A DNA stretch of 63,638 nt, the filler included, from Choristocarpus tenellus KU-1152 (taxonomy: Eukaryota > Protista > Phaeophyceae), in assembly GCA_964200185.2 (NCBI GenBank). It is 9 parts of 9 records of this genome, joined end to end, with 100 filler letters (N's around TTAATTAATTAA, not from the genome) between each part and the next. Parts side by side here need not be neighbours in the genome. Positions count along the whole stretch, not along the records: positions 1 to 5,165 come from CAXNAD020011644.1; 8 more parts are not named here. The stretch is one strand, 5' to 3'. Positions 1-5,165 of the stretch are shown here, in pieces. Made by a program: the position numbers and the translations under genes. The notes under the pieces are model-generated. The model had not been told where the DNA came from. It worked only from the letters and a program-made list of their open reading frames with translations, and searched no databases. Within the stretch, counting starts at the first letter, position 1. Every line of letters starts with the position of its first letter.

Positions 1-196
1 CAAACACGTTGAAGACACGACGGGTCAAATACTTATCCGCAAGGCCCATATTTTTCTACGCGACGTATTTGGGTGCCGCATTAGATAGGTTCGGACTCTG
101 GAATGAAAAAAAAACTTATTCTGCGTGCCAAGATGTTGACTCTGCCGTTCGTTCTTGACAAAATATGTAACGAAGTGCATTCTATACCACATTCAC

Positions 197-3100
197 CTCC
201 ATCTGGTAGCCGAAGTCCGTCGCCACGGTCTTTGGAACGAAAACGGTCGCCTCATCGTGTCCCATTGCCTTTCCCTGAGGATTGACGGCCTCAGCAAAAC
301 ATCAATGCGTCTGAATTGGGACGAGGGTCTGCCCCAAGGCTTCCGGCAGGCAGGAAGGGCCTATCACGCGTTCTTGAACGAGAGACGCGGATACCTGCAA
401 CGTTATGTGTGTACATGTGACAGCCCAACCATGTGGCATTGAAACTATCACACGTTCTTGAACGAGAGACGTGGATACCTGCAACGTTATGTACGTACAT
501 GTGACAGCCCAACCATGTGGCATTGAAGTGTTTGCCATGGGATATGGTTTCGTCACGTACGTGGAGGTTATTCCGGCGTTGGTTCAAGATCTTGTGGTGT
601 ACCGCAGCACATTTGTTTTTTCGTGTAGGGAAACAGGACATTACGACGTACCGACGCTCACACACAAAGTCTTGGGGTCTCGCGATTTCCGTTTGTGGTG
701 TGTGTAATCGCGTGCACCGTGTGAGCAACGTGTAAATATCGACAAGGAAACATTACTACAACAATCGCACACCCGACACCTATCCATAGGAGAACAAGAC
801 AGACAACAAGTTGGAAAGCAATGGAAAAAAGCCAGCACACTCTTCTTCTTACCTTCCACTTGCCGTCCTTGTAGGCTTGGGTGAAGGAGGTCTCTATCTT
901 CTCTTTCACCTCATCCTTCAATGCCGCGTTGGACACGAACACCTCCACCCTCCTGCTCCTTTCAAGGACCGCCTCCACCACGTTGTGCCTCTCTGCGCTG
1001 AAGGAGACGACGGTGTCCCCAGCATTCGTGTACCTATCATAGGAGGGTAGTTCGTCAATTATCTCTAGGAGTACATTGTATTGCGCACGGATTCATCATA
1101 TCATACATCAAAGAGTAACCTATCGATACAGGGTAACACACTCTTGGTGCGGACAGACGCTTAACATGCTGATTTTGGTAAGGTCACTCGTGGTATGGTT
1201 TGACGCCCCTTAATCGTCACCCAGCCTGTTGCGTTACTGTTTAACGATGTCCTACACCTGTACAAAAAAAATCCCTGCTGCCGTGAAGAAGGGCGTGTGT
1301 GACGTTATTAACGAACCTGTTAACGAGGAAGTGGAGGGCCCTCATGGGGATGTCCGTTGCAGCACCTTGGTATTCCACGTCACACATGGTTTGGAGCACC
1401 GGACGATATGCACGACGCCCATGGCCAAAGATGTGGTCGACGGTGACTCCCTTGTTGCATGTGAAATCTGTCCCACCGTTGCGCACAAGGAGATTCATGT
1501 CCTGGCAAGATCTGAGATGGTTATCAGTGCCTGCGACAGGGTGCTCCCCCCCCCTCGAGTTGTATATTACAAGCAGGGGATTATCCTCCACAACCAAGCC
1601 CACCTTCGACGCGAGAAGAGGTCCTGAATGAATAGAAGGCGAGAGCGAGCGCATGGGTCTGGCATGCGTCAAACTTGACTGTGTCATCACACAAGTAGTT
1701 ATGATAGTCCTATTTTTGTGGAACGCAAGGCAAATAACAAATGGAAAAAAGAGATGCAAACTATAGGAAATTCTGTAATAGGAGGAAAGACGGCAAAAAT
1801 CGTGTAGTGAACAATATACCCTTTATTTCAGCGCTGGTGAACTCCCGAACTCACTGTGTAGGCGGGGTAAGTGCACGGCCCACGGCCAGGGCACAAATAG
1901 CGCGATGGTGCCCTGAGGATGTCGCTTCATCTGCAAGCACTTAGCCACCGTGCGCAAGTGTTCATTGGTCGCCTCTTCGTCGTTGAGGAGTATTGGCTCG
2001 GCGGCAATGGACACTATGGCGAGCTTTGGCGCGTTACGGAACTCGAACTTTTTCAGGCTGTCTAAGGGTATCGTAGGGTCGAGAGGGTGAAGGTCGTGTA
2101 GCGCAGTGTTCTCAGTCCTGGTTTGACATCATGACACCCGACACGGTATACAGACAGCACAACAAGAAGGACAGCATCGTAAGCAACAGTGCAGGCAATC
2201 GTATCATTGAGTGAGGTCCTGACAATATTTCGACAGCATCCCCAAAAAGTCAAGGCGCACCCTCCACAACGCCAGACCCATGAGATACATCTCGTGCAAG
2301 GAGGGTAGACGTAAAAACACTAAGTTCCATGGTCCATGGAAACCTCCAAAAAAACGACACATCCAACGCACAAAGGACAAGCAATCCACATGATGTACAA
2401 GCAGCCAAGATCCACGTGCAAAGCAATGCGAAAGCGAACACGCAGACACGACTTGTATGTCCGTATAATGTGCAACCACGCCGAGACCCACATACACTTC
2501 TCCATGTCCGCTGTTTTGCTGGGTGAGGGGGGACGTAAAAGGTTTTGTCTGGTGGGTGACCCGCCTGTGCTCCTTGCCTTACGTTTATCCTTACCCTTGG
2601 CCCTGCCCCGACCCACCGCTTCCTTCCCCACCGATCCATACCCTTCGCTGCCCTCCTGTGCCATAGGGCAATTGATACATAATCGATTCTTGTGCCTCTC
2701 GTCGACTACAATCTCCGCGTAGGCACATTCGCCCATATGCGTGATGGAGCACTTTGGGCATGAATACCTGTCGCGCGTGTCATTGAAGGAGAGCGTTAAA
2801 GAGGCAGGTTAGTATTTTTCGAAATCATTAATTGGGCGCAACAACGCAACGCGGGGAACACGTTTACGAAGTACCACGAAATTGGTGGCGCAAAACAGTA
2901 CGAAGTAGTACAGGTGGGATACAACAGTCGGTGATGTATATGCATTAACACACAATCGGACTGTGGCAAATAAAGAGACGTGTGGGTAGCGTCTGCAGCG
3001 CCACACACAGAGGAACCCCGCAAGTTCCACCAGTTTAATGGCGTGCACCGCTGAAAAGAGACAACCTAGTTAGCCGTTCGGGGGATTGGATGGAAACCAA

Positions 3101-5088
3101 TCTTACGCCATTAATTACCCGCTATCCCCGTGTGCACCGTTACAACTACATTACTCACCGAGACGTAGGTGGAGGATTGCATCCAGTACAGCAAACGCCC
3201 GCGTTCCACCCTCCATGGCCGTTTTGTTCTTCTTCCACATCAGGAACGCTGCCGACAGAACCCCCTTCGCCCGTATCCTCCCTGTCTGGCAGTCCATCCC
3301 CTCCCTCGTCTTCGTCCCCTCCTTCGTGTTCGTCCCCTCCCTCGTTTCCATCTCCTCCTCTATGTTCGCACCCTCTCTCGTCTTCTTTCTCACGGCCATC
3401 TGATGCCGATCCGTTCTTGCTCTGGACGTCTGCGCCGCCGCCACGACCGGCCGGCCCGCTGTGAACCTGGTGGAGGTTGATCTGGTTGAGGACATCCTGG
3501 TATTTCCCATCCCAGGTGGTGAGGTAAGCGCGTAGAGTTGAGTCCTTCTCGATAATCTGGTGTTGGGCACGGCGGAGGACGTTGTTGAGGAGAGGAGGGG
3601 ACGATGGTAACGTTAAAAATGGGAGAGTGTAATGGAGTTACGATAGCATGTCAACCGAACAACGGAGCAAACCTATCGGTTTATGTGGTGAACGTGTTTA
3701 ATGGATGCGGCTTGCGGGGCGAAATAGTTTGAAAGAAGTCTATGTCGAGGATGCCAGTCTGTAGGTTACGACATTGACACATGTTGGAGGCAGAAACGAG
3801 GTGGAGATTAACGAAGATCGTTGTCTAGAGTAGAAGGAAACGATTGGCTATTCCCGCTATTAGCAACGAAAGACTAGAACTGACAAAATAGCATCGTATG
3901 TTGTAGGGAAGGCAACTCTGTCGCTCATGGTGATGACGAAGACCCGCTACGAATCCTACCAAGTGTCATCTACTTGTTCTTGTATAAGCCATATTTCAGC
4001 TACAATTACCAATACAGGAGGCACACTCACGACTCTGACCCGTTGCATGGGTTTCATTCCGACTACCGTCTCGATGTTTACCCTCAGCTGCCGGACGGGC
4101 CCCGCTTGTTGGTCGCCAGATGAAACCTTCTCCAGAGGTTCCGCAACCTCCATCTTCCTCTCCTCGCAGTGGGGCTTGACCCAGATGTCGTGCATATTGC
4201 CGTTCTCATATGCGAGCTTGTTCATTTCCCTAGCAGGCCATGCATCATTCACGTAACATCCAAGAAAAAATTGAAACAGCCAATAAGTGCGGTGCCGAAA
4301 ACTATGCTGACAGTATATTTTGCAATTGAGGGGCGCATGGCCACGTATGGGTGCACTGGAGATACGGAAAAGGAAAAAAAGGAAGATAACCGCTGTAATT
4401 TCCACCATTTACAAACCTTTGGAACTCTCGTGTCCACTTCTCCTTCGGCACAATCTGCCTCGTGCGCGAGACTACCATTCTAGACATGTGCGCGTCCGAT
4501 TCGATGTCCTTGTAGTCCCTCGCCGTAGGAACCCTCCTTTTGAACGACCTGTATCTGCAAAAGGGAATGGCCATGAAGGATGTCAACGAAAACGATGCGC
4601 AGGTAATGATGACGAAAGGGTCGCCCATGCATTAAATATTCATGGATCGATAGTTTTAGTTCATGACAGACAACAGCGCGCATAAACAGGAAACACACAC
4701 TGTTGGTTAAATCTACACAATACTACGAAAGGTTCTTCGTTTGACACAACAATGGCCGACAATATTCTTCATCATAGGAGACACTTATTTCACGTCAATG
4801 TGCAATGTCCTGCGACCTGCATACATTGCGCACTGCTGTCTACACGATAAAGCACAGCGGCGGTTTGACTTGCCTAGCAAGCAGATGGATGCATAGCCCC
4901 TGCTTGAGAGAAGTGAAGCCAGCAAACTCCTCGCGACTGAGATAGTTCAGTGTGACTACGTGGCGGTCGACCTGCGGTGCCTTGCTCTCACACACTTCCT
5001 TCAGTACCTCGAAGGACTCTGGTTTAAGGAACTTTACGCCTTTCTGCCAGTTTCGTAGAGTTGGTTTCGACAGGGGAGCAACACCCAC
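197..5088 (-). pseudogene. Multi-exon gene, probably decayed: putative HTH, acidic linker, PHD finger, beta-class DNA amino-methyltransferase-like domain; incomplete at both ends
   Basis: Hand-spliced exons with consistent phases: 5088-4874 / 4554-4417 / 4229-~4031 and 2117-1855 / 1623-1317 / 1033-853 / 394-197, plus exons near 3556-3159, ~3050-2980, ~2767-2495 and ~2290-2200. Peptides: LC[VC]GAADATHTYSCPKCSITHMGEC..LCINC (PHD-like); LFGDAVEIL, HPQGTIALFVPW, DIPMRALHFLVNRYTNAGDTVVSFSAERHNVVEAVLERSRRVEVF (beta-class MTase layout). In-frame stops at ~2250 and 302-304; frameshifts at ~3285 and ~3005. Confidence 0.65.
361..527. repeat. 84-bp tandem duplication (2 copies) spanning a minus-strand splice acceptor
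   Basis: ctatcacgcgttcttgaacgagagacgcggatacctgcaacg...ggcattgaa at 361 is repeated near-identically at 445. Confidence 0.95.
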
Positions 5089-5165
5089 CTTGGCGATGGG
5101 CAGAAAAGGAAAATATCATGCACCCAGTCAGCCAGGATGAGGCATCGTTATTTCCGCGCCAACGG

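Follow-up and report, generated by a model that had tools for sequence, protein, structure and literature searches.

A spliced accessory gene with an amino-methyltransferase fold and degenerate motifs in a decayed, most likely Sola1-type, brown-algal transposon

The stretch of DNA analysed here (the window) comprises 63,638 nt of joined Choristocarpus tenellus sequence, and its first 5165 positions, from contig CAXNAD020011644.1 and called below the 1-5165 copy, are most likely an internal, decayed section of a large Sola1-type brown-algal DNA transposon that covers most of a spliced accessory gene. The predicted product joins a C4HC3 zinc finger to a methyltransferase (MTase) fold of prokaryotic type, and the new result of this analysis is that the catalytic and S-adenosylmethionine (SAM)-binding motifs are lost in all homologs covering them. 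Judged from sequence, proteins of this family more likely bind DNA or chromatin than write an epigenetic mark, and we give a probability of about 0.6 to the reading that they serve as non-catalytic helpers of the transposon. A related gene has been described in Ectocarpus sp. 7, in which the accessory gene of Sola1-1_Ec32, located on the strand opposite the transposase, encodes a 1104-aa protein with a ParB-like domain and an N4-cytosine/N6-adenine (N4C/N6A) methyltransferase (PMC12477816), so that the kind of gene is already known.

Methyltransferase fold and its motifs

The MTase fold is carried by three exons, here called A, B and C (Table 1). Searches with the spliced model took one exon at a time; for whole-domain tests, the Ectocarpus homolog P0035 (829 aa) was used and every exon entered the alignment as a separate row. 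The exons follow one another along P0035 in the expected order; the matches are strong at B and C and weak elsewhere, and intermediate loci connect the weaker exons to it. A reference profile built from YhdJ and 34 viral sequences related to it is matched by exon C at 80.7% (score 34.6, E 1.3e-5, shuffled maximum 20.3) and weakly, at the expected place, by exon A; exon B alone gives no match. The whole domain matches the same profile at 91.8% (E 7e-7, score 52; shuffled maximum 16.4), in an alignment that is colinear from end to end and places motif IV before motif I, which is the permuted order. Additionally, the Atlas model of P0035 residues 488-743, of low overall confidence, has a TM-score of 0.65-0.69 over ~200 residues to ten PF01555 clusters. 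A beta-class (circularly permuted) amino-methyltransferase fold of prokaryotic type, which the initial annotation of this DNA had proposed, is supported by the alignment and the model. The profile match was obtained with the YhdJ-type profile and not with the Pfam family that the annotation had named (N6_N4_Mtase), which neither the exons nor the full homologs match even at E 10. Sequence scans of the exons against Pfam, PHROGs, NCBIfam and PDB returned nothing, as did an Atlas feature search of exon B, and a single-sequence AlphaFold model of the domain was discarded (predicted local distance difference test, pLDDT, 35).

Within this predicted fold, the motif IV pattern [DNS]PP[YFW] is present in 28 of the 35 reference sequences and in none of the 16 homologs covering it, a small sample from roughly ten lineages that may have missed an active branch. 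Its replacements are SIAA, NVGA, NIAA, DITE, DLTS, SISA and SIRA, with DPPY aligning to NVGA in Ectocarpus and to SIAA in the 1-5165 copy. Likewise, FxGxG and the acid after strand 2 are found in none of the nine exon C rows: DPFAGS aligns to degenerate strings and the strand-2 Glu to a hydrophobic residue (Val or similar), with a Gly-rich remnant of motif I kept in loci L014 and L015. In this class the prolines and the aromatic residue drive catalysis (PMC4738411), and the activity of the rotifer enzyme N4CMT is abolished when the Ser and Tyr of its SPPY motif are replaced (PMC8885841). Since the motifs are missing in all relatives that cover them, the loss is family-wide and predates the decay of the 1-5165 copy. 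The MTase domain is most likely a pseudo-enzyme, and a role as a writer of N4-methylcytosine (4mC) or N6-methyladenine (6mA) is unlikely. The earlier suggestion of an epigenetic system other than 5-methylcytosine (5mC), with intact relatives to be sought, does not hold for the relatives found, which at 20-50% identity are without the catalytic and SAM motifs. Nor do these results support a 4mC/6mA writer guided by histones.

Gene structure, zinc finger and repeat context

The gene consists of nine minus-strand exons from 5088 to 197 (2175 nt, 725 codons), all in phase and with one premature stop. Four of them, 2117-1855, 1623-1317, 1033-853 and 394-197, had been annotated before and stand, with AG/GT ends and matching phases, and five further exons upstream were absent from that model. 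All eight introns are skipped in contigs of run X3, at the model sites or a few bases away, including those between the four annotated exons (852-395, 1316-1034 and 1854-1624). GenBank models of other copies concur at three junctions (P0004, P0040, P0046), and P0004, from another Choristocarpus copy, has the 1317/1033 junction; instead of revealing other junctions for the four exons, X3 agrees with them, as P0004 does at that one junction. None of the eight exon joints was seen in runs X1 and X2. X3 is not recorded as RNA, and we infer that it is; as its contigs mostly differ from the 1-5165 copy, they indicate that the family is spliced and do not prove that this copy is expressed. The peptide LFGDAVEIL (2249-2223), previously taken as coding, falls inside intron 2491-2118, which is skipped both by X3 and by the P0046 model, where the upstream exon is joined straight to exon 2117. 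A candidate exon at 3050-2979 was dismissed, being skipped by X3 and P0040. The first intron has a GC donor at position 4873 in the 1-5165 copy and is skipped in X3 joints.

The first exon aligns weakly to a region of P0035 downstream of the ParB-like N-terminus, which is itself missing from the 1-5165 copy, and the acidic linker exon contains an 18-nt tandem repeat (3292-3399). In exon A, an HPQG element (1921-1910) corresponds to LKxxG, and in exon C, strand 2 (954-934) has Val where the SAM-binding Glu is expected. The copy is decayed, as had been claimed: its TGA leaves it unable to make the full protein, and a duplication repeats its last splice acceptor (Table 1). In relatives, the MTase fold is followed by a conserved C-terminal domain of ~150 aa with invariant VRL and CP, which has no Pfam or PDB match; a SET-like reading of this domain found no support.

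The spliced finger reads CxxC-x9-CxxC-x3-H-x3-C-x15-CxxC (P0040). Its location upstream of the MTase exons agrees with the initial annotation, and its proposed start near 3010 does not, since that position sits in intron 3158-2768; in the 1-5165 copy, the first CxxC (3190-3179) and the remainder (2760-2668) lie on either side of this intron. L005, L008, L015 and L017 also have the finger, P0035 and L007 do not, and the eight ligands follow the C4-H-C3 order of PHD fingers in P0040, the 1-5165 copy, L015 and L017. Canonical PHD fingers have CxxC-x4-H-x2-C spacing and a Trp before the last CxxC. The ligand order of the proposed PHD identity is therefore retained, whereas the spacing (x3-H-x3) and the last knuckle (R-[LVR]-CxxC, resembling that of FYVE fingers) depart from it, and no significant Pfam or PDB match was obtained. 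A weak model of the finger (pLDDT 54) resembles FYVE and PHD fingers alike at Z of at most 4, its best scores being 4.0 to the RIM finger and 2.9 to the PHD-like finger of VAL2. From its sequence and model, the finger is best called a putative FYVE/PHD-like cross-brace type that varies among lineages.

The 1-5165 copy matches GenBank protein P0041 at 100% identity across the matched part. In run X1, 3850 contigs align to it and cover 30 of its 30 bins, most of them 80-95% alike and only 579 at least 99% alike, numbers that are no measure of copy number. Another Choristocarpus contig, L003, is 84% identical to it in introns as well as exons, an equal conservation that is the pattern of recently copied DNA. 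Between positions 197-4420 and L003, transitions affect 13.4% of CpG sites and 4.7% of other C/G sites (2.8x), an excess expected if these repeats carry 5mC. Choristocarpus is presumably a member of the order Discosporangiales. NCBI taxonomy places it under Sphacelariales. According to one preprint, DNMT1 was lost only after Discosporangiales branched off.

A search with exon B retrieved 24 proteins among 1.84 billion, the named ones all from brown algae (Choristocarpus, Ectocarpus and Pylaiella), and scans of viral and metagenome contigs gave no match. One candidate, P0006, was set aside as a repeat artefact. A member from Ectocarpus sp. 12 (P0050) is 57% identical to exon A, and the same alga holds the P0035-type subfamily, so that both subfamilies occur in one genus.

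Table 1. Features of the 1-5165 copy (positions in the window) and of its homologs (positions in the locus named)
Feature	Position	Strand	Remarks
Whole piece, one diverged copy of a multi-copy repeat	1-5165	.	No termini or transposase inside
First exon in the piece	4874-5088	-	AG acceptor, GC donor; weak alignment to Ectocarpus P0035 residues 128-179
Exon, helical N-terminal region	4417-4554	-	Weak alignment to P0035 207-276
Exon, N-terminal region	4031-4229	-	Homologous segments in L005 and L008
Exon, acidic Gly/Glu/Asp linker, then first finger CxxC	3159-3556	-	CxxC at 3190-3179
Exon, remainder of C4HC3 finger and basic linker	2492-2767	-	CxxC-x3-H-x3-C, R-x-CxxC; 2760-2668
MTase-fold exon A	1855-2117	-	Strand 4; degenerate motif IV SIAA (2011-2000) replacing DPPY
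MTase-fold exon B	1317-1623	-	Central strands, variable loops; conserved Pro = HPTxKP proline
MTase-fold exon C	853-1033	-	Degenerate motif I SFSAER (1005-988) replacing DPFxGxG
Last exon in the piece	197-394	-	In relatives the gene runs on past the contig edge
Intron holding LFGDAVEIL	2118-2491	-	Noncoding
Premature TGA	302-304	-	Seen in this copy alone; L003 and nearly all aligned contigs have CGA (Arg)
84-nt tandem duplication repeating the last splice acceptor	361-527	.	Absent from L003
C-terminal domain in relatives	L004:16331-16804, L007:4982-5431, L014:4061-4486, L015:4004-4444, L006:11608-11988

Transposon setting and known systems

A transposon origin, raised as a possibility in the initial annotation, is borne out by the repeat nature of the sequence and by transposase genes or remnants beside its homologs. 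The truncated gene copy at the Pylaiella locus L006 has a DUF7869 transposase (E 4e-22) immediately upstream on the same strand, and two Ectocarpus loci, L004 and L002, each have a transposase remnant upstream that runs on the other strand. Compared by eye, these sequences share motifs with the printed Sola1-1_Ec32 transposase. As the 1-5165 copy holds neither transposase nor terminal repeat, its Sola1 assignment, probable on this sequence evidence, rests on homologs in other species. No transposase was found near L007 or L008. A multi-copy repeat was recovered and flanking repeats were not: the loci fetched, several of them gapped or short, gave no convincing terminal inverted repeats or 4-bp target duplication, and long inverted repeats in L004 were dismissed as termini because they sit in gapped low-complexity stretches.

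Several other features accompany the homologs. At L002:3500-5016, a gag-like zinc-knuckle retrotransposon fragment splits the transposase remnant upstream of the gene. Peptidase_C48 (Ulp1-like) genes are often carried on DNA transposons, and one at L004:20883-24195, 3.6 kb downstream of the Ectocarpus homolog, is a candidate member of the same element. An element of ~245 bp with 26-nt inverted ends, resembling a miniature inverted-repeat transposable element, occurs at L093:12165-12410 and L093:4878-5123, the first copy being absent from L005, which is otherwise 99% identical to L093. Downstream of the L007 homolog, a 1319-aa intronless open reading frame on the opposite strand (L007:9323-13282) has only a partial BROMI_C match.

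The closest published counterpart is the accessory gene of Sola1-1_Ec32, with which the present gene shares a brown-algal host, spliced passenger organization and an MTase fold; its relatives are of similar total length, and those at L004 and L002 likewise have opposite-strand Sola1-type transposase remnants upstream. Unlike that gene as published, with no finger mentioned and methylation predicted, this family has a C4HC3 finger in several lineages and has lost the motifs. Giant DNA transposons with prokaryote-type amino-methyltransferase and ParB-like domains are also known in the red alga Bostrychia, where the Plavaka genes PAG2 (PF01555 and SET) and PAG3 (ParB-like and 2-oxoglutarate oxygenase) have been reported (10.1101/2025.02.11.637652). 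These belong to another superfamily and have the domains on separate genes, and PAG2 is detected by Pfam, whereas the brown-algal family is not and its C-terminal domain is without a SET match.

Prokaryotic PF01555 enzymes (E. coli YhdJ and phage relatives) have the same permuted order, colinear over 222 columns, but retain the DPPY, FxGxG and strand-2 Glu lost here, and are without the introns and added eukaryotic domains. Similarly, N4CMT of bdelloid rotifers is a beta-class fold of bacterial origin fused to a small eukaryotic domain; in contrast to the transposon-borne brown-algal protein, which is without the SPPY motif, it keeps SPPY, has a true chromodomain, is a host enzyme shown to be active, and silences transposons (PMC8885841). 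The closest functional precedent is the N6A-methyltransferase domain of DIRS1 retrotransposons, also transposon-borne and predicted to be inactive in all copies, but derived from PCIF1, unpermuted (group 2) and located inside a retrotransposon polyprotein (PMC4738411).

Predicted function and alternatives

The full protein would consist of a ParB-like N-terminus (relatives only), a helical region, an acidic linker, the C4HC3 finger (several lineages), the MTase fold and the C-terminal domain. In the reading to which we give a probability of about 0.6, the N-terminal part and the DNA-binding surface of the MTase fold probably bind the element's own sequence, the finger may contact chromatin or DNA, and the outcome would be to help transposition or to resist silencing. 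The inactive domain of DIRS1 is a precedent for such a non-catalytic helper.

Several observations weigh against this reading. Motif IV keeps its first residue (D, N or S) in 16 of 16 homologs. Neither a transposase nor a terminal repeat occurs within 1-5165, and in L005/L093 no transposase was seen in the ~6.7 kb that precede the first exon matched. The Ectocarpus homologs contain a DGAHR motif and match KorB at E 0.04, but the ParB-like domain is not confirmed by profile, its scores being at shuffle level. Orthology to the Sola1-1_Ec32 protein appears probable from its published description. Finally, the ratio of nonsynonymous to synonymous substitution rates (dN/dS) between the 1-5165 copy and L003 is 0.62 overall, so that constraint on these two copies is weak. 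Descent from a phage ParB-methyltransferase fusion was also considered and is not supported, as tests of the ParB-like region against such fusions scored at shuffle level and the thin profile used for them fitted the MTase domain poorly too.

A more specific proposal is that the pseudo-enzyme, with its optional finger, has been kept over the history of the class as a sequence-specific reader or shield against host silencing. The silencing countered would be 5mC in early-branching species that retain DNMT1 and histone marks in the remainder. We regard this as a tentative and rather unlikely proposal; if true, it would represent a transposon anti-silencing factor of independent evolutionary origin, made out of a bacterial restriction-modification enzyme.

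That the gene is captured cargo, a functionless and neutral passenger, appears improbable. The stops and frameshifts in the 1-5165 copy, L005 and further copies would fit such cargo, as would the dN/dS of 0.77-0.93 in exons A and B of the two Choristocarpus copies, but any transposon family can be expected to include dead copies, exon C has a dN/dS of 0.24, spliced forms exist, and lineages with 20-50% identity still have open frames and share intron positions and invariant residues.

Beta-class enzymes commonly function as dimers, and the protein could serve, in the manner of METTL14 or Kar4, as an inactive scaffold in a methyltransferase of two subunits, with the active partner encoded by another element or gene. 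The group has known examples of inactive partners (PMC4738411), and red algal transposons bear Pfam-detectable PF01555 genes. However, no active paralog appeared in our searches or in the fetched flanks, and surveys report brown algae to be without DNA methyltransferases except an early-lost DNMT1, which makes this arrangement quite improbable.

It is very unlikely that the protein is an N4C/N6A methyltransferase that works through a non-canonical active site and is guided by the finger to mark the element's own DNA. The intact fold, the D/N/S at the end of strand 4, the motif I remnant in L014 and L015 and the methylation predicted for Sola1-1_Ec32 (PMC12477816) would be compatible with activity, but no member covering these sites keeps either proline, the stacking aromatic, FxGxG or the ribose-binding acid, the Pfam family is not matched, and no 4mC or 6mA data for brown algae were found in the literature searched. 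Equally hard to sustain is the view that the gene is a member of an expanded host family or is carried by a different class of element (KDZ, EnSpm/Plavaka, Helitron or an endogenous virus), for although transposases are absent from 1-5165 and from the surroundings of L005/L093, L007 and L008, and in red algae related accessory genes shift between Plavaka and Mutator transposons, Sola1-type transposases or remnants adjoin three homologous loci, introns are conserved like exons between copies, and viral contigs gave no match.

The non-catalytic helper reading bears on the published idea that giant transposons of algae may methylate their own DNA by means of captured bacterial enzymes. Beyond Ectocarpus, this analysis places the family in an early-branching brown alga, in which it is abundant and spliced. 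For this brown-algal family, the sequences argue for an enzyme that is without activity across its lineages and is nevertheless conserved. The emphasis thereby moves from hunting for 4mC and 6mA to what the protein binds.

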